Assembly (NCBI RefSeq): GCF_021869535.1
Contig: NW_026262581.1
Span: 114,762,001 to 114,826,000, forward strand
Reading direction: 5' to 3'
Source of the DNA: Mytilus californianus
Taxonomy: Eukaryota
DNA length: 64,000 nt
Part shown: piece by piece, positions 2,013-45,842 of the stretch
Layout of the letters: every line of letters begins with the position of its first letter
How positions within the stretch are numbered: the first letter of the stretch is position 1
The notes under the pieces: generated by a model
What the model was told of the DNA's origin: nothing
What the model saw: the letters and a program-made list of their open reading frames with translations, nothing else
The model's database searches: none
Program-made: the position numbers and the translations under genes

Positions 2013-2997
2013 TTATCTGCAAGCAGAACATCGACATTCCAAACCATTCCAGGACTGAACAAGACTTTTAAAATGTGAAAAACTATTTTCAGTCCTGAAA
2101 TGGTTTGGAAGGCTGTTCCATAAAGTAGCAGCAGCAAATTTGAAAGATTTTTTACCGTAACGGGTTGACTTTACCTGTGGAACATCTAGAATATTTACAT
2201 ACCGGAAAGAATACTTAGATTTTTTGACACTCACCAAATTTTGTAAGCACACAGGAGCTATATTATTTATAATCTTAAAAGTTTCTAGAGCCATTGTTCT
2301 AATCCGTCTAATCTGCAAGGAGGGCACCTTAGCTTTAAGTAAGAGGTCCTCGTAGGGGCTGGTAAAATCCTCATATACAAAACGGAGTGCTCTTTCCTGC
2401 ACCTTTTCTAATTTTTTGGAATTTTTCTCAGTGCAAAAATGCCATGCCAAAGGACAAAAATTAAAATTACTAAGAATAAAGGTATGAAAAATAGTAAGTT
2501 TACTAAGTCTATCCAAAACTGAGCCCAAACGTTTTAAAACATTTAATTGCTGTGATGCCCTCCTACAGATTGAGCTGATATGAACATCAAAATTTAACTG
2601 ATAGTCAATTTCAATGCCTAATAATTTAACTGTTTTTTCACATGTAAGGTTCGAGTTTTGAATACGTATAGATGGGTTTTGTTCAAAGGTCTTTTTGCCA
2701 ACAGCCAAAACTTGAAACTTATCGGGATTTGCTTGCATTTTATTCACCCGGAACCACTCAATAAGTATTTTTGACTCAGATTCCAAAGTTGAAATTAATA
2801 AATCAAAATCTGGAGTACAGAAAGACAAAGTATTGTCATCTGCATAGTTATATAAACTTCCATTTTTAACAAAAAGAAAAATATCATTTATAAATATGTT
2901 AAACAACAATGGCCCTAGTATAGAACCCTGTGGTACGCCTTTATGGATGTCAGCCAAATCACTCAGAACATTGTTGACTTTAATTTGTTGTTTACGA
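2013..2997 (-). pseudogene. LINE ORF2 C-terminal RT part after the frameshift
   Basis: Shifted frame reads NRKQQIKVNNVLSDLADIHKGVPQGSILGPLLFNIFIND..YADD..KLLGI..WNSLP. The expected SYLSNR is shortened to S-NR, consistent with a small (about 8 nt) deletion. Confidence 0.88.
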
Positions 2998-5163
2998 TTA
3001 GGACTTTAAAAGAGCAACAGCATGGGGGGATACACCATATGCTGATAATTTATCTAGCAAGATATTGTGAGGCAGGCAGTCAAAAGCCTTAGAAAGATCC
3101 ATTAATACCGCTGCAATGTACTGGTTTTTATCGAGAGCTTCACGCCAATCTTCTAACACTCTGAGAAGTGTGGTCTGACATCCATGTCCACGTCTAAAAG
3201 CACACAAAAAAGGATTAAATATTTTATCAAAGTATTCAGTTAGTTGAATTTCATATATTTTTTCAAAGATTTTAGAAAATATGGGTAAGACACTAACTGG
3301 TCTATAGTTTGTTTTTAATAATGGGTCACTCTTTTTATGAAGGGGGGTCACTTGGGCTTCTTTAAGTTTGTCAGGGAAACAGTTATTTTCAATTGATAAA
3401 TTTACAAGAGTTGTCAGCTGTGGTGCAATATAAAATTTACAATTTTTTACTATTTTTGCTGGAATACCATCAGCTCCTGTAGCCTTCTTTATGTTTATTT
3501 TATTCAAGATTTTATTGACATTTTCGTTAGATACTTTCTTAAATTCAAAGTCAGAAACATGCTTTCTGTTACTCAAAATTTCTTTTATACTTGGGTGATT
3601 TGAGGGGTCATATACCACATCTGCTCCAATTTTGTCTGCTACTGTGGAGAAAAAATTATTAAAAACATTTGAAACTTCATTTGGACTATTTACAATTTTG
3701 TCATTTTCACACAATAAGATTTTTTGTTCTCCACAGTTCCCCTTTTTTGAGAAAAATGGTTTGACTGTTTTCCAAAACTCGCATGATTTTGACCCACCAG
3801 AGCAACGTTCTAAAAAGTATACTTTTATTGATTTTCTCTTTATCTTAGTTACCAAATTTCTTTGTTTTCTAAATTTCTCCCAATTTTTGTCACTCCGGTT
3901 TTTAGTATATTGTGAATAAAGCATTTGTTTTCTATATATGGCCCCTCTCAGTTCTTTATTCATACATGGCAGTGGTTTTCTTCTTTGACACCTAGATTTG
4001 ACAGGTGCATGTTTATTTAATATATTTTTAAAATCTTTTTCATAATCATCATAAATACTATTTAAATCTTTCTCAGTACAGTTTTCTGAAATCTTTATTT
4101 TCTGTAAATCATTTGTAAATTTGTCAATATCAAAAGTTTTGTAACTTCTATATGTTACGTCCCTGCATTTTTGTGCAGGTAAATTCCCTTTCACAACTGT
4201 AGAAATAATATTGTGACAGTCACTAACACCATTTGGACTATTTGTTGTTTTAAAACACAAATTCTTTTTACTTGTAATAATAACATCCACAAGGGATGGG
4301 TTACAACCCTTTTTAAAACATGTTGGACCTTTAACCAGTTGTGATAAGTTGAAAATATCACATATATCATGTAAAGTCTGAGATTTTTCAGCAGACAACA
4401 TATCAAAATTAAGGTCACCAAAAATAATAATATTTTCATATGACACAAAACATTTATCTAGTGATTTTGTAAAATTATCAATAAAGTCATTATTTTTCAT
4501 GGATGGAGGTTTGTATGCTCCCATAATAAGCCATTTGGCATCATTTATATAAATTTCATAGCAAATATTTTCAAGTTTATCAGATTCAAAACATTGTTTT
4601 CTACTGGAGGGAAAGTCTGATTTAATCAAGGTAAGTAAACCACCGCCGTGCTGATCTCTGTCACGCCTTTGTAATTTATAACCATCAACTTGAAATAAGT
4701 TGTCTTGGAAGGTATTGTCCAATTTCGATTCGGCGATCATCAATAAGTCAACTATATTGTCTGTGAGAAGTTCTTTTACCTCATCAAATTTGAACCTGAG
4801 ACTGTTTATGTTTACATATGCCGCAATAAAGTTCTTTGGATGCAGACGTCTGGTCTCTCTCAAATCTTGGAACAAAAGTTTGTTTACACCGGAAGTAGAG
4901 TTTGACGATAGACTGTCATTTATAGGTGCGTTTGACTCCTCGTTAAAATCAATAAAATACGAATCGCTAAAATCTGGTAAATAACATATTTTGCAGAACC
5001 AGCTGTCAGTTGAATTTCCAAGTAGTTCATATTCTTTTAAGGGTAGATTTATACATTTTAGATGAAACCACAAGTTACAATCATCACACTGGATTGCCCG
5101 TTGGTTTTTTCTGACTCCCTTCTCGCAAGTTCCACATGGAAATTTTACTGGTCCAGGATTATT
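2998..5163 (-). pseudogene. LINE ORF2 N-terminal part: PHD finger, APE endonuclease, start of RT
   Basis: The frame is open upstream of the listed start to a TAA at 5164-5166: NNPGPVKFPCGTCEKGVRKNQRAIQCDDCNLWFHLKC..WFCKIC is a C4HC3 PHD finger. It ends at a frameshift in RT (LLKS*). Confidence 0.88.
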
Positions 5164-28884: not shown

Positions 28885-28975
28885 TCACTTAGTCTGTGAT
28901 CATTGGGCTCAGTAATAAGTCTGCAAATTTATCTTCATTTTCCGAGAACACTCGTGGTCAAGTTATATTTTGTTT

Positions 28976-29210
28976 TGTTCTAGACCATCGTATCAGCATT
29001 GTTCTCGACCATCGTATCAGCATTGTTCTCGACCATCGTATCAGCATTGTTCTCGACCATCGTATCAGCATTGTTCTCGACCATCGTATCAGCATTGTTC
29101 TCGATCATCGTATCAGCATTGTTCTCGACCATCGTATCAGCAGTGTTCTCGACCATCGTATCAGCATATTTCTCGACCATCGTATCAACATATTTCTCGT
29201 ATCAGCATTT
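28976..29210. repeat. 24-bp tandem repeat, about 9 copies
   Basis: Unit tgttctcgaccatcgtatcagcat; explains four overlapping repetitive ORFs. Confidence 0.95.
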
Positions 29211-29890
29211 TTCTCTGGATTTCCTGTATACTTATTTTCTCCAGTAAACGTTCTTATTGTGCACGGTATAAGTCTGATGAACTATCACATTGCTCTGATT
29301 ATATTGAGAAAAGATAAATAGGCAAAGATGGATAGTTATCTCATGATAAAAGACATTAACAAGTATATTATCCCCGCTATCAATCTACTTGTTAGGTTTT
29401 GCTGTTTTTAACGATATTCGTTCAGGTCTGACACAGTTTGATACTGTATTATTTCCCAAAGAAATCGAAGGGCAATATAAGTAGTTTTTTTTATAATATA
29501 ACTCGATTACGTCTCCAATAGCAAGTGCAGGTGATCTGCATGTTGTTTTATTTATTGAAGAAAAAGTTAAATGCAGAATGAAGAAAAAAAGTGTATTGAC
29601 TATATAAATCGCATCTATAATTGAACTTGAAGAGAAGGATGCAACAGATAGTGAGATATATACATATTTTGTTTTGCACCTAGTGACAGTGTGGCTAAGA
29701 ACTATATTTTTTTTCTTCAACTTTTCCTTGTCTTTATGCATCATACATCACCTACTCTTTATTCGTTTAGGCAGACTTCATATTTAAGAGCCTCTCGTGA
29801 ATAATGGTAGGACGTTGGAATTATGAATTAACTCCAAGTTACGCTTTATAGATGATGTCCTCGTAATGAGCGGTTCAAAGTTTTGATTGG

Positions 29891-30839: not shown

Positions 30840-32018
30840 ATGAACGGATCATTAAATTATGCAGCCAGCACAAATCTAACGACCATATATAATCTGTCTG
30901 ACATCAACTCTGAAATTGTAGATTTTACTGAAATAGAGTTGAACAAATCACCGAGTTTTATCAAACATGACTCTGGATTTATTGTGGTAACTAAACTAAT
31001 TATACTGACAGTTATTATGGCCGTCGGAATCACTTGTAATGTTATAATCATATATTCTATAGGAAATAAGCCTCAATTTCATGGACCACCATTTTATTAT
31101 TTGATTAGTCTGTCAGTTTCCGATCTATCCAGGACAATCTTTTGTTTCCCTTTTGTTCTTTCTTCTATTGTGGAAGGATCTATATGGAAACATGGGGATT
31201 CCTCATGTACGCTTTTGGCATTTGCAAATACATTTTTTGTATTCAGTTCTGTTGTAGCTTTATTTGCTATTGCAGTAGACAGACATCTTGCCATTGTTCA
31301 TACACAGTTTCACAAAAGACGATCACGTGGGTTTATGAATCTCGCTATTGTAGTTGTTGGTTGGTTAGTGTCGTTTGCTGTTTCGTTCCCGCCAGTTTTT
31401 GGAATGGGTACATACAAATACATACCAGAAGAATCGCAGTGTACCTTTAGGCATCACACCTACCGCGGTAATGATACATTAGGGTTTCTTTTAGTTATGA
31501 CTGGAGTTATGACTGGTACTATCTTATTATATGTGAAAATATTTATATTTCTAAGAAACCACAGGAGAATGTGTCCATTACAGAGACATATTCCAGCACG
31601 TAGTAATAATTGGGCATTTATTGGCCCAGGTGCCAATGGACATCTTATGATGAATTGGATCAATGGATTTACAAACGGCATGAATCAAATTCCAACAATA
31701 CCACAAAATCTAGCCCATATTGCAGGTCGTATTCGGCTGCCAAGGCCAGTAAAGAATGAACATTTGACGAAAAAGTTCTTATTTGTAACAATTATGTTCG
31801 ACTCGTTGTGGATTCCATATTTAGTGAAAGCTTTTATCTCGACGTTAAATGAAACTGAAATTCCATATGTTGTTGGGACTATATTATCGTGGATGACCTA
31901 TATGCAAGTGGCTCTATGTCCACTTATATACTTATGTCTAATGACAGTTAAAACTAAATCAAAGAAAAAAGATAATAATGAGGACGCAATATACCAGATT
32001 GATTCTGGACAACTTTGA
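30840..32018 (+). CDS. GPR85-like: Class A (rhodopsin-like) 7TM GPCR, SREB family (GPR85/GPR27/GPR173-like), 392 aa
   Basis: Seven hydrophobic segments, N-glycosylation sequons at the N-terminus, LSVSD, DRH, WIPY. SFPPVFGMGTYKYIPEESQCTFRHHTYRGNDTLGF and NWAFIGPGANG match the recalled GPR85 segments SFPPVLDVGTYSFIREEDQCTFQHRSFRANDSLGF and NWTFHGPGASG. Confidence 0.9.
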   Translation: MNGSLNYAASTNLTTIYNLSDINSEIVDFTEIELNKSPSFIKHDSGFIVVTKLIILTVIMAVGITCNVIIIYSIGNKPQFHGPPFYYLISLSVSDLSRTIFCFPFVLSSIVEGSIWKHGDSSCTLLAFANTFFVFSSVVALFAIAVDRHLAIVHTQFHKRRSRGFMNLAIVVVGWLVSFAVSFPPVFGMGTYKYIPEESQCTFRHHTYRGNDTLGFLLVMTGVMTGTILLYVKIFIFLRNHRRMCPLQRHIPARSNNWAFIGPGANGHLMMNWINGFTNGMNQIPTIPQNLAHIAGRIRLPRPVKNEHLTKKFLFVTIMFDSLWIPYLVKAFISTLNETEIPYVVGTILSWMTYMQVALCPLIYLCLMTVKTKSKKKDNNEDAIYQIDSGQL

Positions 32019-34202: not shown

Positions 34203-36799
34203 TTTGTGTTAACGCATGCGGAAGAATATTTCGAGAACGTTTTGCAACAAAAGCGGGAAAATATGAATGCCTACTCAAATCCAATCTATTAGAAAAACGA
34301 GTTATTACAGAAGAGTGTCCACCATGCACTTGCACTGCACTATCATTAGAATAGTAGAATATAATGATATATAAATGGATGAAAATTTGCCTGTAGAGTT
34401 ATTAAGATGATCTGCCATATATATAACTGTTATACAAATATTGATATAATATATAACAACAAACCAGAGTATACTGATAACAAATGATTATATCACTACA
34501 ATATAATAATAATTATTACGGTGAGGTTGAATTCCCTGTCATTTATTCATCATCCACACAAGAACTTATCTCAGAAAAAAAAATTATCTATCTACCTTAA
34601 CCCAACTTTCAGATATAGAGATATGAATTTTTTTCTGAGACAAGTGCTTGTGACCATCCACCAGAACTTGCGGTGATCCGATGTTCAGTACTTCAGTACT
34701 TTGATTCTTTAAGCTGAAGCATCTATTTCTATAAAAAGAATGTAAAGCTTTGGTTTTGGTAAACCGTTAATGTCTTTCAATATATAAGTGGGCATGTCTT
34801 ATCAAAATAAGGAGATGTGGTATGATTGCCAATACGATAACTATGAACCAGAGTCCAAATGACATGGGTGTAACAACTGTAGGTCACAATGAACAAAATC
34901 GATACCGAATAGTTAGTTATAAAAGGCCCATCGTAAGAAATGGCCAAAAGCGCATCAAAGTTCAAAAATAGAAAACTTAACAATAAGGAACGAGAAATCG
35001 TAACTTTTGTCATACAATCTCTTGTATCGAGTTTTTCCGTGTGAAACTGAAATATCCAAATTTAGAAATGGACAGTTATTTATGTTTATACTAGATTTAT
35101 TTAAAGTAAGTTCCCTTGGGTATATTTCCGCAGTATAATAAAAAAAATCTTGATTATTTAAGACAAGTTATAACTAATTTAACGGAAAGTTTTATTAAAT
35201 TTATCATTTAAAAGTAATCTTTATTGAGTTTTGCCGTAAATTATGATTCTAGCGATACAGGAAAAATGTCTGCTATTAAAGGGGATCAATTGGTGCCCAT
35301 TGGAATTCATAAACTTGTCGATAAACGAACATAGATGTTGTTTAGGAGAAAATAAACAGCCACAACCATTTTATTACAGTTTCAGTAGATATACATAGTA
35401 TATCAACAGGTTTGTCATATTCTTGCATTGCACGGGAATATATATTTGTGGCTATCTACGTGATTTTTGTATTTTTCCAAATGTTTAATATCATAACTGT
35501 GAATTTATAAAAATGGAGAAAAGTGATGGAAGCCGACAGAAATAGCATTGAATTAGGAGGACTAAATCTGTTAGAGGTGCACTGATTGATAGCTACGCCT
35601 GGAAAAACGTAGTCTTTTTATTTGTTGAAATTTGATTTTGAACAAGCTTTCAGTAACTGCAAGTACTCTTAAATAGGTACTATTTGTCTTCTGTTGTAAT
35701 ATTAGTTTTTATTGTGCTTAGTACCGAACTTACAATTTAAGTCTAGCCCTTTGTTACTGCTTTTTACAGTTGTTTTGTGTTGTGCTGTTACGCACCGTTT
35801 CGGGTTAAGATGAGCGTCCATAAACATGTGTAACCACGTTACCCTCCGAACGTGTAAGTCAGGATGAAGTCCTAAAAGTTATTTGTTGCCGTCTATCATA
35901 ATTATTTATTTTTTATTCTTATAAGCTCAAATCAGGACGTCAATTTTTTCTTTCGTTATTGGCCTTCGGCTGTTATCTGCTCTTCGGCCGGGTTGTTGTC
36001 TCTTTGACATATTCCCCATTTCCATTCTAAATTTTACTTATCCTTCGGTGGATATTTTTCTCATTTGGCAATAATACAGCACCCCCTATTTTCCCATTTA
36101 AGTCACATTATGCAAACAATAATAGACGTCAGCCGTTTCACCATCTACTAATACAGATGGGAAAGGAAACGCTAATAAACGAATTTTGAAATAGTAAAAA
36201 GAATTTTATTGTTGTGCAACCTTTTTTTCCTGGTGTATTCGACAGATATATTTATGCAAAAAATAATGAATAGATTTGCCAGACATTACACTTCATGCAC
36301 ATTAATCGTGTAAAGAAGTTATCTAATAAGGTTCCTTAAAATGACATACTATGCAATTACATGTATAGTTGAACGGATGATTCACACTTTTTAACATTTA
36401 AAGTACATTTAAATGTATAGAGTTGTATTCAATTCTTTTTAATAGATAAGTCAGATATGATTGTTCGACACCAGGGTTAAGTGACATTGTGTAGCGAAGT
36501 GTAAGTCAATACATGCACCCCATATATTTGTTTTTTCTTTGTGGAAAATTATCGCTTCGTTTAATTTTCTTTCAATTGGCATATGACCGGGTATACAAAG
36601 TCGGTAGTTTGAAATTCATTATAAGCTCAAAGTAGAAAATTATTGAGGTTTTGTCAATTTAAAGATATCGATTATTTATTATCATTTGGAAATTTTTAGG
36701 TTATTACACGTGATTCAATTTTGTTAGTTGGACAAGTATGTATATGTTCTTTAAATGACTTCCGAAGGTGCCAATGCGGTTTTGAAATTCTAAGTCAAA

Positions 36800-37085
36800 A
36801 TGGAGTGGAATCGAAAAATAGAGGACAAACTTACAGAAAATTGGCAATGGTTGATGAAGACAGTCATGCTGAAAGAAATCGTCCATGTTTTGATAGAAGA
36901 CAAAGTTATAGCTCTGGATTTCTGGATGAATCTAAAAGAGAAACAAATTTCTGAGCAGGATAGGAATGCGAATTTTTTCTTCGAAGTTTCCAAATTCACA
37001 AAGGAGAGATATAGAATGTTTGTTGATGCTTTGAGAAAGGGAGGACACAGTCACCTAGCTGATATGTTGGAAATAAAACCACAAG
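36800..37085 (+). CDS. CARD (death-fold) exon, first coding exon of a CARD-coiled-coil gene
   Basis: MEWNRKIEDKLTENWQWLMKTVMLKEIVHVLIEDKVI..EQDRNANFFFEV..YRMFVDALRKGGHSHLADML fits the six-helix CARD pattern (L..N...L; F..AL...G..HLA..L). Donor CAAG|GTATAA, phase 1. Confidence 0.75.
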
Positions 37086-37928
37086 GTATAACGAATAATT
37101 TACTGAATGAATTTTCATATAGATGTTAATTTTGTAAAATTTTAATATATTCACATATTCCAACTTTTCCTTACATTTATACCAAGGTTTCGTTATTGGT
37201 GTGTAACAACCAGGTATGTGTTCAACAGGAAAACTTTCCTATGCGATCTTGTATTGAATAAGTCATAATGGTACAATTTCAAAGTTTTTGTAAGGCCGAC
37301 TCAAAGAGAAAATTTGTGCATGTTAAATTTTCAAAATCTTCATTATTATTTTTTTTCACGAATACAATAGCGATCCTAGATTCAGTCGTGTCGTCGGCGT
37401 CGTCAACATTTAGTTACAGACTGCGGTTAAAGTTTTGATAGACATCAATTAATATATCATGGAATTTTAGAAACATGGACGGAAGCTTACTCAAGAGAGC
37501 ATCCAGCAGGAGCAAAATTTGATTTATTTTCTCTAATTTTTCGGTATTTTATTAATAATGGACTTAAATTGTTTCGACAACCATAAAGATACAGTCTTGT
37601 GTTATTTAGACATCACTTTGCAAAACCTTTATTTTATGGAGTTTTATGAAATTTGGACAGGGATAGCGTGTTTTTGGAAGTCAACATAACACCTTTTCAC
37701 TGACAGCATTCGCATTAAAATTTGTCGATATCTTAGAATTGTATAAAAATCAACAGACTGATAAATTAAATTGACATGCGTGCTCCATTGATGAGAAACA
37801 AAGGAGTAGGATAAATTTCATCTGTATATATTTCTTTCACTCTCTTAGCTTTGAAAACTTTACCTATTTTCGAACACGCATATGGTGCATCCAATTATGA
37901 TTTGTATCTTGTTACTTTGTATTATTAT

Positions 37929-38995
37929 GGCAGTTGCTATTTGTCCGGCTAGCCGGACGAATAGTACCAGGACTATTTGTCCGGCCAATACAATACGCAT
38001 GTCACTATTTGTGTGTGCGTGTAATATTATCTTCATCAGCACCAGGGGGTCGCAAATTATATATGGATATTTAAAAAGCAATGTTTTGCAATCTTTAATT
38101 GTAAGGCCCCAATCTTGTTACTGGTAATTGAAATTGTTGTTTCCTTCATATATAGTCCAATGTGGACAACGTATAATTTGAAATTTTTTTCATACATATT
38201 CCATATTTATTTCTTTATCTATGGCTTCACAATTGTATGAAGAGGGAAGAAAATACTTGTAAAGCAAACTTGGGTCGTGATTGACTCATGCATTTTAAGT
38301 TAACGTAAGGATTTGGTCTAGTTGAAAAAGATACAAAATTGTTATGTCTGAAGCTGTCAAACAGAATTATAGACCCCCTTAACATAAAGTTATCCATATT
38401 TTGAGTTAGAGGTGGTAGATTTTTCTATATGTTTCCCCCAAAAAGTAAACTACACTGTAAAAATCTTATTAGGAATCCCAGGTGGGATTTTTCTTTTTAT
38501 TTGTATTTATTGTTCTAAATAAATGCACTACGTTAGGGGGTCGAGGTGACACAGGGTTCCTTTTCCCAAATCCCTCTTTGTCCCCCCAGATCCGACCTTT
38601 GTTGTCCCCTATATTCCATATCCCCACTTTTTACAACCTATATCCCACATCCACACCTTTTGTAACCCCCGCTCCCCCTTATATCTCACTTTTCCTTGTG
38701 CTTTCAGTTATTTTTGAGTCCCTTTTATAAAATTAGATCTTTCTTTAAGTTCATACTTTCGTATTCGCTTGTCTAATTCTGAAAACTGTAAACTGTATCT
38801 AAAATATTGATATCGCTGTTTTCAGCCATGATCAGTCAAAATTGAAAATCAGTGATCGGATTACACGCGACCCCCTGGTGCTGCTGAAGATAATATGACA
38901 CGCACTTCCGCACGCACATAAAGTGACATGCGCATTGTCATGGCCGGACAAACAGTCCTAGCACTAGTCCGGCTAGCCGGACAAATAGCCACTCC
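37929..38995. mobile_element. Mutator-like non-autonomous element with ~130-bp TIRs and 10-bp TSD
   Basis: 37929-38060 is the inverted repeat of about 38870-38995 (gctatttgtccggctagccggac..agcaccagggggtcgc). GTATTATTAT at 37919-37928 and 38996-39005. Confidence 0.8.
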
Positions 38996-39053
38996 GTATT
39001 ATTATCAGTGGATCGATCTATCTGCTAGTAGATTGCAAGGCCCCGAAGGTGTC

Positions 39054-41175
39054 GATATCCTAGCCACCAATGCTGTTTGTATTGGCATGTTATTACTGTG
39101 ATATCCTAGCCACCAATGCTGTTTGTACTGACATGTTATTACTGTGATATCCTAGCCACCAATGTTGTTTGTATTGGCATGTTGTTGCTGTGATATCCTA
39201 GCTACCAATGCTGTTTGTATTGGCATGTTATTACTGTGATATCCTAGCTACCAATGCTGTTTGTATTGGCATGTTATTACTATGATATCCTAGACACCAA
39301 TGTTGTTTGTATTGGCATGTTGTTGCTGTGATATCCTAGCTACCAATGCTGTTTGTATTGGCATGTTATTACTGTGATATCCTAGCCACCAATGCTGTTT
39401 GTATTGGCATGTTATTACTGTGATATCCTAGCCACCAATACTGTTTGTATTGGCATGTTATTACTGTGATATCCTAGCCACCAATGCTGTTTGTATTGGC
39501 ATGTTATTACTGTGATATCCTAGCCACCAATGCTGTTTGTATTGGCATGTTATTACTGTGATATCCTAGCCACCAATACTGTTTGTATTGGCATGTTATT
39601 ACTGTGATATCCTAGCCACCAATGCTGTTTGTATTGACATGTTATTACTGTGATATCCTAGCAACCAATGCTGTTTGTATTGGCATGTTATTACTGTGAT
39701 ATCCTAGCCACCAATACTGTTTGTATTGGCATGTTGTTACTGTGATATCCTAGCCACCAATACTGTTTGTATTGGCATGTTGTTACTGTGATATCCTAGC
39801 CACCAATGCTGTTTGTACTGACATGTTATTACTGTGATATCCTAGCCACCAATGTTGTTTGTATTGGCATGTTGTTGCTGTGATATCCTAGCTACCAATG
39901 CTGTTTGTATTGGCATGTTATTACTGTGATATCCTAGCTACCAATGCTGTTTGTATTGGCATGTTATTACTATGATATCCTAGACACCAATGTTGTTTGT
40001 ATTGGCATGTTGTTGCTGTGATATCCTAGCTACCAATGCTGTTTGTATTGGCATGTTATTACTGTGATATCCTAGCCACCAATGCTGTTTGTATTGGCAT
40101 GTTATTACTGTGATATCCTAGCCACCAATACTGTTTGTATTGGCATGTTATTACTGTGATATCCTAGCCACCAATACTGTTTGTATTGGCATGTTATTAC
40201 TGTGATATCCTAGCCACCAATGCTGTTTGTATTGACATGTTATTACTGTGATATCCTAGCAACCAATGCTGTTTGTATTGGCATGTTATTACTGTGATAT
40301 CCTAGCCACCAATACTGTTTGTATTGGCATGTTGTTACTGTGATATCCTAGCCACCAATACTGTTTGTATTGGCATGTTGTTACTGTGATATCCTAGCCA
40401 CCAATACTGTTTGTATTGGCATGTTATTACTGTGATATCCTAGCTATCCTAGCCACCAATGCTGTTTGTATTGGCATGTTATTACTGTGATATCCTAGCC
40501 ACCAATGCTGTTTGTATTGGCATGTTGTTGCTGTGATATCCTAGCCACCAATGCTGTTTGTATTGGCATGTTATTACTGTGATATCCTAGCCACCAATGC
40601 TGTTTGTATTGGCATGTTATTACTGTGATATCCTAGCCACCAATGCTGTTTGTATTGGCATGTTATTACTGTGATATCCTAGCCACCAATGTTGTTTGTA
40701 TTGGCATGTTATTACTGTGATATCCTAGCCACCAATGCTGTTTGTATTGGTATGTTATTACTGTGATATCCTAGCCACCAATGCTGTTTGTATTGGCATG
40801 TTGTTGCTGTGATATCCTAGCTACCAATGCTGTTTGTATTGGCATGTTATTACTGTGATATCCTAGCTACCAATGCTGTTTGTATTGGCATGTTATTACT
40901 TTGATATCCTAGCCACCAATGCTGTTTGTATTGGCATGTTATTACTGTGATATCCTAGCCACCAATGCTGTTTGTATTGGCATGTTATTACTGTGATATC
41001 CTAGCCACCAATGCTGTTTGTATTGGCATGTTGTTACTGTGATATCCTTGCTACCAATGCTGTTTGTATTGGCATGTTATTACTGTGATATCCTAGCCAC
41101 CAATACTGTTTGTATTGGCATGTTATTACTGTGATATCCTAGCCACCAATGCTGTTTGTATTGGCATGTTATTAC
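39054..41175. repeat. 46-bp minisatellite, about 46 copies, intronic
   Basis: Unit gatatcctagccaccaatgctgtttgtattggcatgttattactgt. Confidence 0.97.
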
Positions 41176-41485
41176 TTCAATAGAAACTGCCAGCTAACGT
41201 TAGATATCTTCCCAATGCACACGTCTACGCTGTTTTTTTGTGTGTGTTTTGATTCTATTTTGTTTTTCAGTTGTTTTTGTGAGATGGAGATATAATCGTC
41301 TTATTGGTGTTTTTGTATTTGATTGTGTAATAGTGTATTACCTTGCTTTGAACCTGATGAAAATCTAATTTTTTTACAAAGTCAGTATGAACGGTTTATG
41401 TAAATAGTTTAAACTATGAACCATCTATTTAAGAAAGATGTTTATGTCATTTTGTACTTTAAAGTATATTTGCATCCTTTGGTAG

Positions 41486-41592
41486 ATTTAAGAGTCAACA
41501 AGACACCAACAGCCTTGGGTCCTAAAAATGAGAGAATTAAAAAGGAAAATATACCAAAGAACAGTAAAAGTAAACCTCCTCCAGAACATATA
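41486..41592 (+). CDS. Second coding exon (Lys/Pro-rich linker) of the CARD-coiled-coil gene
   Basis: catcctttggtAG|..ATA|GTAAGT, 107 bp, phase 1 to 0, exactly bridging the CARD exon and the coiled-coil exon: DLRVNKTPTALGPKNERIKKENIPKNSKSKPPPEHI. Confidence 0.65.
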
Positions 41593-42309
41593 GTAAGTCT
41601 AATGTTACTGTCGTGGTTAACCAGTTGCTATCTTTTCATACATTTGTCTTTCATTTACGTCAAACGCGATTTAAATATGTTTGATTGTGATTCAACCAAG
41701 GTATGAAGGGATTATGGATTTTAATACAAGGTGTGTGTTATAATTAGACTTTTGTCACCATAAGCATTTTTAGATATCCTATCATATCCAAACTTCCTCG
41801 ACACAATCAGTTCAAGCACTTTAAAGAGTCTTTTTGCACTGTATTTGAATAATTTTACTGTGTTAATTCTATAAAGCGAATCTCCAACTTAAAAGTGTTA
41901 TTCCTTAAAAGTTCATGTTTTGATTTACCTTATTTTTTATTTGATTGTCACCTATTTGAAGATCATGTGAGTCTTATATAATAAAAAAAATTTAACACCA
42001 CAGTGCAGTCCCATTGACGTGAACCCTTCGTCGCCTCACATTCATTTACTTGAACTTCAAACAGAGTAATGTAATCACAAAACTGACTGAGACATTTGAT
42101 GTTCACCATTTTCCAAAATATTACCCTTTAAAAATAATGTCTACAAAATCAGGGAAGTAACTGTACTTCAAGTCTTTACACCAGCCATTGAAATAGAATG
42201 CAGCATTACGTATACTGCTCATTGTAAGGGTTATTTACTAGATTATACTAGACTAGTCTGGTATCGACACTGTTTGACACCAAATTGGTTAACAAACTCG
42301 TGACAAAAG

Positions 42310-42440
42310 AGATGCGAAAGATACCAAAGAGATACTCAAAATCATAAGTCGAAAACACACTGACAAAGAAAGCCAAGGCAAAAAACGAAAAACGACGAAA
42401 AGACAAGTAGTACACAAAACACAACAAGAAAAACTAAAGA
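42310..42440 (+). repeat. A-rich dispersed repeat family
   Basis: cataagtcg..aaacgacgaaaagac..cacaaaacac..aactaaaga(c/t)tg. Degenerate relatives at about 10790, 14340, 51650 and, inverted, 55560. Confidence 0.5.
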
Positions 42441-43354
42441 CTGATTTCAACTTGACCACTTGGTTCAATAGCTTCCTTGTAAGCAACAACCCTCTACCAA
42501 GGAAAGTGTCTAAAGAGGTGTTTGGAGTTTAAATACTTTTAAAGTGTCTAGTTCTCACATTACCTTTTATTTCGACATTTATGTTTGGTCTAGCCATCTC
42601 GGCAATACGATGGGTGTAACTTTCAGATCGTGTTGCCCTATCAACGTTCTGTTTATTTCCATAAAATCTAAATATTATTCAGCCAATACAATTTTAATAA
42701 GAAGGTGCTGATTGTAAATATCGCATATGTAACCAATTTTTTTTTTCTCAAAGAAAGTTTCGATTGAATTTTGATTTTGTTTAGGAATTTTCCTTCAGTA
42801 AATTTGATATTAAAATAATTAAAAAGTTGCCAATACCTATCAAAAAGTTAAAATGCAGTTTTAGCCATCCAAAGGAATTTATAATATAATACATGAAGCT
42901 GTGATACTGTGGAATTAAGTATAGATTCAAGGACATATTAAATTACACTGCTGGTAAAAATCAATACATCAGAATCTTTATTTGTTTGTTGTTTATTGTA
43001 CCATAGTATAAGTGTTGGCTTGGTCATGAATTGTTGTATTTAGGCATATACAGGTTTAATTGATTTTGTACTTCATTTATTACTAATAGAAAATGCGTCA
43101 GTGGAAACATATAACTAGGGGTTAGTACAGGGTTTTATATGATAAACATAACATTCTGCATCTCACGCCAAGATAAGATTGTCTCCTTTGTAAAGCATAA
43201 CGTATATTTATGTTATCAAAGAACATTGTTAAACTAATGAACCAACCAGGTCAAGAACTATGCGTCAATCTTAGCTTTCCACATTCATGTGTTTCCCCTT
43301 TATCCAGGTTCCTATACATGATATTTTATGTCACCATTTCTGTTGTATTTTCAG

Positions 43355-44206
43355 TCTAAACATGACCGCACACCAAGTGATATAAAGCGAGAAAACTCTG
43401 AACTTAGGAATCAACTAACAACAATCTCCTCTCATGTTGGACACCTTCATTCAGTGACCCAAAACATAGCAGGGTCACTTGTGTCACATAGTAAGACGTT
43501 CGTGGCAGAAAAGGAATCTTTTGTTCAAAGGATTCAAAATATAGAGGAGCATGAAAAATATCTGGAGCTGCAAGATACGAATCTTAAACAGGAAATGGTT
43601 ATAAAACATTTACGATCTGAAATCGTAGATCTGAAAGTTGATCTAAATCATCAAATTAACCAACTGGAAATAAAACTGAAGGATGCTAACGTGAAGAGGG
43701 AACTTAAACAGCAAGAAGCTGAAAATTTGCTTAGTAAGATCACAGGGATAAAAACACAAATGCAAAGTCTTACTAAAGATTTAAATCTAGAGAGAGAAGA
43801 AAAAATAAAACTGAAAACAGAATCGACAAAATTACGGAAGCAGAATAGTGACCTTCAAGAAAAAATTAGGCAACAAACTTCAAAAGTAGTGTCGTTCGAA
43901 AATGATATGCTGCAAGTAAAGTCGGAGAAAGAATCGGCAAAATCTGAATTTAAACTTCTTCAGAAAAAAATGTCAGAAACCGAGAAAATGTTGAAAGATA
44001 AGACACAGAAAAATGATGAATTATCACATGATATAATTGATGCAAAGTGTAAGGCTGAAGAATTTGAACAGGAAAACAAAAGACTAGAGAACAAAGTAAG
44101 CAATTTTGAAAAAGAGATTGTAGACTTGAAGGCAAAACTCCACAAACTAGAAGCAGATAAACAACGAGCTAGAATGAAAAGTAGCGTTGTCCCGACATGG
44201 CGCTAA
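43355..44206 (+). CDS. Terminal coiled-coil exon of the CARD-coiled-coil gene
   Basis: ctgttgtattttcAG| phase 0. 283 codons, E/K/L/Q-rich and heptad-like, nearly proline-free through the central region; stop at 44206. The listed ORF start (MSPFLLYFQ) is intronic polypyrimidine sequence. Confidence 0.8.
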   Translation, partial: SKHDRTPSDIKRENSELRNQLTTISSHVGHLHSVTQNIAGSLVSHSKTFVAEKESFVQRIQNIEEHEKYLELQDTNLKQEMVIKHLRSEIVDLKVDLNHQINQLEIKLKDANVKRELKQQEAENLLSKITGIKTQMQSLTKDLNLEREEKIKLKTESTKLRKQNSDLQEKIRQQTSKVVSFENDMLQVKSEKESAKSEFKLLQKKMSETEKMLKDKTQKNDELSHDIIDAKCKAEEFEQENKRLENKVSNFEKEIVDLKAKLHKLEADKQRARMKSSVVPTWR

Positions 44207-44452
44207 AAACGAGTATGATCTGTTTTGTCTTGACATTTTGTAAATATTGCCGCAAAAAATACACATCTATATTTGTTTTATTGTTGATGTTATAAGTATT
44301 AAACTAATTGTTGTTGTTTTTCAATTGGATTCATTAGAATAATAGATACATTTTACTTTTATTGGCCCGCTATTGGATATTTGATTTAAAAAAAAGAAGT
44401 ATAGCTTCTCTATAAAATTATGTTAACAGCAATCTGTAAGGGAGCTACCATT

Positions 44453-45842
44453 TGACTCACCTTTTCAAAGGAAATGTGAGCTTTTGCCATCACTTGTCGT
44501 CCGTCGTCGTCGTCCGTCCGGTGTAAACTATTTCAAACATCTTCTCCTCTGAAACTACTGAACCAATTCCAACCAAACTTAAGCTAAATGATCCTTAGGG
44601 TATCTAGAATAAAGTTTGTATTTTATTTTTTGTTTGGTCAAAAAACATGGCCGCCATGGCTTAAAATAGAACATAGGGGTAACATGCAGTTTTGGCTTAT
44701 ATCTCAAAAACTAAAGCATTAAGAGCAAATCTGACGGGGTAAAAATGTTAATTAAGTCAAGTTCTATCAGCCCTGAAATTTTCAGATGAATCTAACAACC
44801 CATTGTTGGGTTGCTGCCACTAAATTGGTAATTTTAAGGAAATTTTGCAGTTTTTGGTTATCTTGAATATTATTATAGATAACGATAAACTATAAAAAGC
44901 AAAAATGTTCAGCAAAGTAAGATCTACAAATAAGTTTAATATGACCAAAATTGTCAATTGACCCCTTGAGGAGTTATTGCCCTTTAAAGACAATTTTGCA
45001 TAATTTGTTTATCATGTTTTCTAACTTTAAAAAATCTTCTCCTCTGAAACTACTGAACCAAACTAAACCAAACTTAAACTGAATGATTCTTAGGTCATCT
45101 AGAATAAAGTTTGTGTTTTATTTTCTGCTTCCTCAGATAACATGGCTTTCATGGCTAAAAATAGAACATAGGGTAAAATGCAGTTTTTGACATATATCTC
45201 AAAAACTAAAGCATTTAGAGCAAATCAGACAAGAAATTAAAGTATTCATTAGGTCAAGGTCTACCTGCCCTGAAATAATCAGCCTAATCGGGTATCTGAT
45301 TTTTAGGTTATTGTCCATGAATTGATGATTTTAAGGAAAATTTGTAGTTTTCGGTTATTATCTTGAATATTATTATAGATAAAGATAAACTGTAAACAGC
45401 AAAAATGTTCAGCAAAGTATGATCTACAAACAAATTTTATGATATGACCAAAATTTTCAATTGACCCCTTAAGGAGTTATTGTCCTTTAAAGACAATGTT
45501 TCACAATTTGTTCATCTGGTTTGCTTACTTTAAAAAATCTTCTCCTTTGATATTGCTGAATCAATTTCAGCCAAACTTGGGCTGAATGAGTGTCAGAGTA
45601 TCTAGTATAATTTTTGTATTTTATTTCCTTGTACGTCAAGAAACATAGCCACTGTGGCTTAAATGGAACATATGAGTAAAATGCATTTTTTTTGCTTTTG
45701 AAGAAAATATGATACAAAGAACATTTAAATGTCATTTTTAAGCCACTCATTAATATATATTGAAAAGCAAAAATAATCATTGATGAAAGATTTGAGCAAA
45801 AAATTACAGGTGAGCGATTCAGGCTCTTGAGAGCCTCTTGTT
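44453..45842 (-). mobile_element. Helentron-associated element (HINE-like), copy A
   Basis: On the plus strand: actcacc..gtgagc subterminal IR, (GTC)n tract, ~500-bp core units, end GGTGAGCGATTC plus hairpin AGGCTCT-TG-AGAGCCT-cttgtt. Confidence 0.82.

Follow-up and report, generated by a model that had tools for sequence, protein, structure and literature searches.

Adaptors that carry a caspase recruitment domain (CARD) govern when initiator caspases and NF-kB complexes assemble. Homotypic CARD–CARD contacts and helical nucleation are established for Apaf-1 with caspase-9, for CARD9 with BCL10 and for RIG-I with MAVS. Molluscs have been reported to be without a CARD-bearing Apaf-1, and bivalves to be without both CARD-bearing Apaf-1 and caspase-9, yet cytochrome c is released and CARD-caspases are activated in them (PMC5550854; Vogeler et al., 2021, PMC7836458; Krasovec et al., 2023, PMC10959488; PMC11463336). 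With a CARD-containing Apaf-1 reported missing in molluscs, the activation of bivalve CARD-caspases downstream of cytochrome c lacks an explanation. A genuine orthologue of the CARD-coiled-coil (CARD-CC) proteins is already held by bivalves, the oyster CgCARD-CC, and BCL10 and a type 1 paracaspase are present in molluscs (Staal, 2018, PMC5978004). Here, a stretch of 64,000 nucleotides of Mytilus californianus (contig NW_026262581.1, positions 114,762,001 to 114,826,000 of the forward strand; hereafter the window, numbered from its first letter) was analysed for a gene at 36800-44206 that encodes an N-terminal CARD followed by a long coiled coil. In our best explanation, which we regard as probable, this single-copy, expressed Mytilus gene encodes a convergent CARD–coiled-coil scaffold that recruits a CARD partner.

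The locus is a real, expressed three-exon mussel gene. Its three coding exons, on the plus strand, join with phases 1 then 0 into a coding sequence of 1245 nt, i.e. 414 amino acids with one terminal stop, and all splice sites, read directly from the window sequence, are canonical GT..AG. Coding exon 1 (36800..37085) runs from the ATG to the donor CACAAG/gtataa, covers Met1 to the first base of codon 96, ends in phase 1 and encodes the entire CARD. An in-frame TAA (36791-36793) lies nine bases upstream of its ATG. After intron 1 (37086..41485, 4400 nt), coding exon 2 (41486..41592, 107 nt; acceptor tttggtag/ATTTAA, donor CATATA/gtaagt) is entered in phase 1, left in phase 0 and encodes residues 96-131. 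Intron 2 (41593..43354, 1762 nt) is followed by coding exon 3 (43355..44206; acceptor ttttcag/TCTAAA), which encodes residues 132-414 and the stop and ends in TGGCGC TAA. No second CARD or coiled-coil exon was found when a six-frame translation of the window was scanned with hidden Markov models.

RNA was mapped over positions 41200-44700 of the window. The 41592>43355 joint (GT..AG) was carried by seven raw stranded reads with six start positions (run X21) and, with zero mismatches, by one contig each of runs X1, X4 and X5 (1440, 1464 and 1369 nt). These contigs overhang exon 2 on its 5' side by 369-396 nt, and all three carry the same 30 letters directly 5' of exon 2. Since these letters have a single match, 37054-37083 at the end of exon 1, exons 1 and 2 are joined in the same RNA molecules, a joint evidenced only by the overhanging letters of the contigs. 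The X1 contig reaches 396 nt 5' of 41484, which leaves about 112 nt beyond the 284 nt of coding sequence in exon 1; assuming collinearity with exon 1, the 5' untranslated region (UTR) is at least about 112 nt long (36688..36799). Beyond 44318 the X4 contig consists only of a run of 22 A, and an ATTAAA (44298-44303) lies 15 nt before this point. The 3' UTR is placed at 44207..44318 with the poly(A) site after 44318. The RNA was assigned to the plus strand because the first mate lay on the minus strand, the rule in most stranded libraries. No further exon was seen in the mapped RNA between 41200 and 44318.

An earlier reading of the same letters (the sequence-only reading) had predicted three exons with phases 1 then 0, a protein of about 414 amino acids, and a CARD, a basic proline-rich linker and a long coiled coil in one transcript. 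This was borne out by the splice signals, the 414-residue open reading frame (ORF), the RNA joints, including the 41592>43355 junction in reads and contigs, the contigs that carry exons 1, 2 and 3, and an identical gene model in Mytilus coruscus. Its guess at a bivalve source was right as well, the source being Mytilus.

In a Pfam search of the window protein, the CARD (PF00619) was the sole domain (E 2.4e-4, profile positions 3-84 of 85), with a score of 21.5 bits vs. a gathering score of 23.9. Caspase, NACHT, helicase and kinase domains were not found in the protein by Pfam, in line with what had been read from the letters. The full-length relatives described below gave no Pfam CARD call at E<=0.001. 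When modelled with AlphaFold2 (AF2) from an alignment of 38 sequences, the CARD reached a predicted local distance difference test score (pLDDT) of 89.4 and a predicted template modelling score (pTM) of 0.75. This CARD model was the one retained; in the full-length AF2 model, made without an alignment, the domain was poorly modelled (pLDDT 35-60). The predicted CARD is a six-helix antiparallel bundle in which helix 1 is split in two, H1a and H1b; the helices span residues 2-13, 15-21, 24-33, 39-47, 52-63, 68-80 and 84-90.

The structural matches of the modelled CARD were CARD structures. The best natural matches returned by Foldseek were to the Apaf-1 CARD (template modelling score, TM, 0.73-0.76; root mean square deviation about 2 Å over 85 residues). 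The neighbours in the ESM Atlas, whether sought by shape or with language-model features, were all clusters of CARD-bearing proteins or their close kin. The AF2 model and the Foldseek matches, together with the Pfam match just short of its gathering score, make the N-terminal domain a predicted CARD of the death fold, which is what the sequence-only reading had supposed. When the Mytilus CARD alone was compared with PDB sequences by phmmer, only a de novo designed protein (7vty, E 0.003) was returned; no natural CARD was matched by this single-sequence search. The designed protein shares 28% identity with the mussel CARD (TM 0.76), and the alignment takes in all of it, as it would for an idealised CARD of the Apaf-1 type.

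Residues 96-137 form a basic, proline-rich linker that is disordered in the AF2 model (pLDDT <50 for residues 92-132). Residues 138-406 (43373-44179) are predicted by AF2 to be one long helix of about 270 amino acids. Its 3.5-residue hydrophobic periodicity (z=15.8) was reached by none of 2000 shuffled sequences, and the region is free of proline and rich in K, E and L. The periodicity and the model both indicate that the C-terminal part is coiled-coil in character, which agrees with the coiled coil of the sequence-only reading. With Pfam, exon 3 gave only sub-gathering matches to a mixture of coiled-coil and leucine-zipper families, some of them cytoskeletal or golgin-like. The helix is followed by the C-terminal motif SSVVPTWR (44180-44203), whose P.W element is conserved across the family.

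A profile of the mytilid CARD was searched against 1.84 billion representative proteins and returned 40 relatives at E<=0.001. They fall into two clades, with hmmsearch E-values of 1e-57 to 1e-13 (clade 1) and 1e-9 to 6e-4 (clade 2). Long matches of 470-625 amino acids came from Dreissena (KAH3820784.1), Mya (XP_052779703.1), Mactra (KAL4226812.1), Sinanodonta (KAL3852748.1) and Potamilus (KAK3585823.1); a Mercenaria member (LOC123528712) was found by a word-index search. M. coruscus contributes the protein labelled P0001, and further family sequences are labelled P0017, P0018, P0021, P0023 and P0073. All named full-length members are from bivalves, under the database names 'hypothetical', 'uncharacterized' or 'CARD domain-containing protein'. 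One weaker named match lies outside bivalves, in the gastropod Lottia gigantea (a CARD protein of 252 residues). When the CARD region served as query, the word-index search gave only mytilid or heterodont relatives, and no named or characterised member among them. The literature search found no published description of this family. The protein had been called undescribed from its letters, and it is already deposited, as an unnamed prediction; the absence of a paper on the family and its uninformative database names fit that description.

Alignments of the family gave the CARD signature L(D/E)(Y/F)W(M/I).LK. In a full-length alignment, nearly all members shared one plan: a signature CARD and, after a linker whose length varies, a long coiled coil that leads to a short motif at the C terminus. 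This last motif is LL.RCV.P.W in heterodonts and SVVPTWR in Mytilus, and is missing from P0048 and P0033. The architecture is shared by clade 2, as in P0035 and in the Potamilus sequence P0048 (no Trp motif). Clade 2 is also carried by two eukaryotic genome assemblies, L006 (10001-12704) and L007 (10001-17609), where a CARD ORF is followed by a coiled-coil ORF of 280-295 amino acids that ends in YAIPPF.VG…GW. Exon structures vary among members, the coiled coil lying mostly within one large terminal exon. The Mytilus form is the shortest of the family (414 vs. 470-625 amino acids); it has a much shorter linker and stops directly at the Trp motif, beyond which heterodont members go on into a tail that contains RR.S. 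Judged by these sequence comparisons, the gene belongs to an uncharacterised family of distant bivalve orders with the same architecture.

Within Mytilus, P0001 (414 amino acids; UniProt 'CARD domain-containing protein') has exactly the same exon join as the window gene. The two proteins are 97.6% identical: 10 of 414 residues differ, all in the coiled coil, and none of the 131 residues of CARD and linker has changed. The corresponding omega is 0.16 (dN 0.010, dS 0.065). Two 414-residue proteins of another mytilid are encoded, as in mRNA, by ORFs without introns on contigs of 1.4-1.6 kb. Against one such mRNA-like contig (L001), pN/pS was lowest in the CARD (0.11), higher in the coiled coil (0.28) and highest in the linker (0.47), in a comparison whose synonymous sites are saturated. 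Purifying selection acts on the gene, and most strongly on the CARD. Because omega is 0.16 and pN/pS is low, this is a constrained gene and not a pseudogene. The same figures bear on the idea that the product is a structural or trafficking coiled-coil protein, outside immunity and cell death, in which the CARD is merely a localisation module. The weak exon 3 matches, confined to coiled-coil and leucine-zipper families of the kinds named above, are what such a protein would give, but the most constrained part is the CARD (pN/pS 0.11; identical in both Mytilus sequences). CARDs are hardly known outside homotypic signalling, which also counts against a structural role, and we consider this idea highly improbable.

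The relation to known CARDs was examined with two profiles searched against all PDB sequences: A2, built from 38 family CARDs of both clades, and the strict profile A4, built from 17 clade-1 CARDs. Neither matched any CARD9, CARD11 or BCL10 chain at E<=10, though such chains are present in the library. A motif following the CARD, YP.L(Y/F)K..T.K, which belongs to a longer conserved segment (LE..YP.L(Y/F)K..TGK.P) that passes without a break into the coiled coil of CARD-CC proteins, was read in human, chicken, frog and fish CARD9; it takes the variant form YP.(V/L)FK..T.K in the oyster CgCARD-CC and is recognisable in the acorn-worm and Nematostella CARD-CC proteins (PMC5978004 supplement). In a comparison by eye, which was also the only form of comparison made with CgCARD-CC, this motif was absent from the window protein and from P0001. 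The slot for a CARD-CC orthologue in bivalves is filled, given the presence of CgCARD-CC in oysters. The layout is most likely convergent because the profiles miss CARD9, CARD11 and BCL10 and bivalves have a separate CARD-CC; at the level of sequence, the combination of CARD and coiled coil would match CARD9 in design without being a CARD9/CARMA orthologue.

These results also weigh on the possibility that the gene is a fast-evolving true CARD-CC (CARD9/10/11/14) orthologue or paralogue that nucleates BCL10-paracaspase filaments in mussels. It would have the same layout, a CARD at the N terminus, a long coiled coil and no other domain, and the BCL10 and type 1 paracaspase that it needs exist in molluscs (PMC5978004). 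However, the profiles that never reach CARD9, CARD11 or BCL10 at E<=10 reach Apaf-1 at 2e-12, and CgCARD-CC, which fills the slot, has both the CARD9-type CARD and the post-CARD motif that are missing in the mussel protein. The disordered 40-residue linker also differs from CARD9, where a coiled coil is packed on the CARD (PDB 6n2m title). Such an origin is very unlikely. The CARD9-like scaffold proposed by the sequence-only reading was therefore kept as an architecture and given up as a homology, the profiles matching the Apaf-1 CARD and never CARD9, CARD11 or BCL10. Of the two origins that it had offered, a distant CARD9/CARMA relative is opposed by the lack of any profile match at E<=10, the lack of the post-CARD motif and the separate bivalve CARD-CC; a convergent CARD–coiled-coil adaptor is favoured by the Apaf-1-like CARD and by the true CARD-CC elsewhere in bivalves.

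With A2, the Apaf-1 CARD came first (E 2e-12, 50 bits). The next natural CARDs were the second CARD of MDA5 (29 bits), ASC (27), caspase-9 and CED-3 (24) and then NLRC4. With the strict A4, Apaf-1 was again first (E 5e-3) and was the only natural CARD below E 0.01. The RAIDD CARD gave E 0.16 with the family profile. The strong score of 2e-12 is due to the addition of clade 2, whose CARD is the more Apaf-1-like. The Apaf-1 CARD also stood in the top tier of structural matches. Both profiles place the family CARD nearest in sequence to that of Apaf-1 and not to the CARD9/CARD11/BCL10 type. The MDA5 score is relevant to another proposal, an adaptor in antiviral CARD signalling of the RIG-I-like receptor or MAVS type instead of caspase activation. 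MDA5 falls 20 bits below Apaf-1 with the broad profile and is non-significant with the strict one (E 0.36), and the mussel protein has no transmembrane anchor and no helicase domain. An antiviral adaptor is accordingly a poor candidate, with a low probability.

Neither NB-ARC nor WD40 was found by Pfam, whether in the exons of the gene or in members of the family. An adjacent NB-ARC/WD40 gene, which would be a trace of gene fission, was not present in the window, in M. coruscus, Mya, Sinanodonta or Dreissena, or at the L006 and L007 loci. One may still imagine that an Apaf-1-type CARD, either kept after loss of NB-ARC and WD40 or recruited instead, is now oligomerised by the coiled coil and forms a nucleotide-independent 'coiled-coil apoptosome' that activates caspase-2-like initiators. 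If true, this would add a second CARD activator beside CRADD, contrary to the one-activator view of molluscs. We consider it unlikely.

The convergent scaffold that we prefer could work as follows. A long parallel coiled coil would make the protein a constitutive dimer or higher oligomer and set at least two CARDs side by side. The tethered CARDs would recruit a CARD-bearing partner through homotypic CARD–CARD contacts. The most plausible partner is a caspase-2-like CARD-caspase of bivalves, ahead of another CARD adaptor. A CARD-caspase is favoured because the CARD is nearest that of Apaf-1 and apoptosome CARDs top the structural list. Recruitment would raise the local concentration of the partner and might act by induced proximity or filament nucleation. 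For the mussel protein itself, an immune or apoptotic role is only what we infer.

The same tethered CARD could act in the opposite direction, as a decoy or brake that sequesters a CARD-caspase or adaptor and damps apoptosis or inflammation, as ARC/NOL3, ICEBERG and CARD-only proteins do. A CARD without an effector domain, seemingly constitutive expression at moderate depth and the great expansion of anti-apoptotic repertoires in bivalves (PMC8917759) would suit a brake. Known decoys, however, are short and have no conserved oligomerising region of about 270 amino acids, and the conservation of coiled coil and C-terminal motif across bivalve orders points to a scaffold with further partners. 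We rate a brake as rather unlikely.

Several points weigh against an Apaf-1-like, partner-recruiting scaffold. CRADD has been proposed as the sole CARD activator of mollusc CARD-caspases (PMC11463336). With the strict family, the Apaf-1 CARD is matched only weakly (E 5e-3, 20 bits, 22% identity). According to the alignment, the acidic helix-3 residues E39-E41 of Apaf-1 are replaced by F/Y-W-M in the family, so that the caspase-binding surface is not conserved as such and the interface is not simply transferable. Because solved structures include few invertebrate CARDs, a CARD type outside this sample could lie closer. Oysters and scallops yielded no family member in searches that were not exhaustive. 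Finally, the identity of the partner is a guess.

The gene order is shared between the window and M. coruscus: a 7tm_1 receptor upstream, the CARD–coiled-coil gene and a DUF229 gene downstream. The receptor is a single-exon rhodopsin-type ORF of 392 amino acids at 30840-32018, and a 392-residue 7tm_1 gene occupies the equivalent place in M. coruscus. Downstream, a 657-residue ORF at 59895-61868 matches by position the DUF229 (PF02995) gene of M. coruscus, the distance from the CARD gene being about 15 kb in the window and about 7.5 kb in M. coruscus. The CARD–coiled-coil gene spans 7.41 kb in the window vs. 6.07 kb in M. coruscus, and the entire 1.33-kb difference lies within intron 1, which is 3.0 kb long in M. 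coruscus. Half of intron 1 in the window is taken up by a minisatellite (39054-41176; 46 bp x 46 copies, 94% matches), an array that may vary in length.

Other repeats were observed in and around the gene. Within intron 2, plus-strand RNA (depth 149 in one run) covered the short stretch 42253-42603 and had loose ends at either side; this is probably one copy of a dispersed repeat and not an exon. Just 3' of the gene, at 44476-44700, RNA depth was in the thousands in contigs and up to 83 in raw reads. Variant letters were numerous there, as were loose ends and joints without canonical splice signals (44559/60>44647). The pattern suggests a family of repeat or transposon-derived transcripts with high expression, separate from the CARD–coiled-coil gene. 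At 2013-5073 on the minus strand, adjacent ORFs of 691 and 314 amino acids resemble by eye a non-LTR (long terminal repeat) retrotransposon with endonuclease and reverse transcriptase, split by a stop or frameshift. At 28896-29321, overlapping ORFs are built of a 24-nt tandem repeat (VLDHRISI / CSRPSYQH), which is probably a non-coding satellite.

The protein offers a concrete candidate, open to cloning, for a step of bivalve cell-death signalling that lacks an explanation, and it was not considered in the surveys cited above. It would represent a second, CARD9-independent origin of the CARD-plus-coiled-coil design. Even if it were a minor adaptor, the work would provide a useful annotation of a family missed by Pfam and labelled 'hypothetical' in all the bivalve genomes covered by this analysis.

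Compared with the CARD-CC family (CARD9/10/11/14, CgCARD-CC, NvCARD-CC), the mussel protein has the same order of parts, an N-terminal CARD and then a long coiled coil with no catalytic domain, and the expected logic is the same, an oligomerising scaffold that would present CARDs to nucleate a partner CARD. It differs in a CARD that is Apaf-1-like by sequence and not of the BCL10-nucleating CARD9/CARMA type, in a disordered basic linker of about 40 residues between CARD and coiled coil, whereas in CARD9 itself the first coiled coil packs on the CARD (PDB 6n2m title), and in the family-specific C-terminal P.W motif. Unlike Apaf-1, it has no NB-ARC or WD40, and oligomerisation would use the coiled coil and not a nucleotide-driven ring; where Apaf-1 has the acidic helix-3 triplet, the family has the aromatic/hydrophobic F/Y-W-M. 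CRADD/RAIDD (CARD plus death domain) is similar in being a small adaptor that combines a CARD with an oligomerisation or assembly module, but in the mussel protein a coiled coil replaces the death domain.

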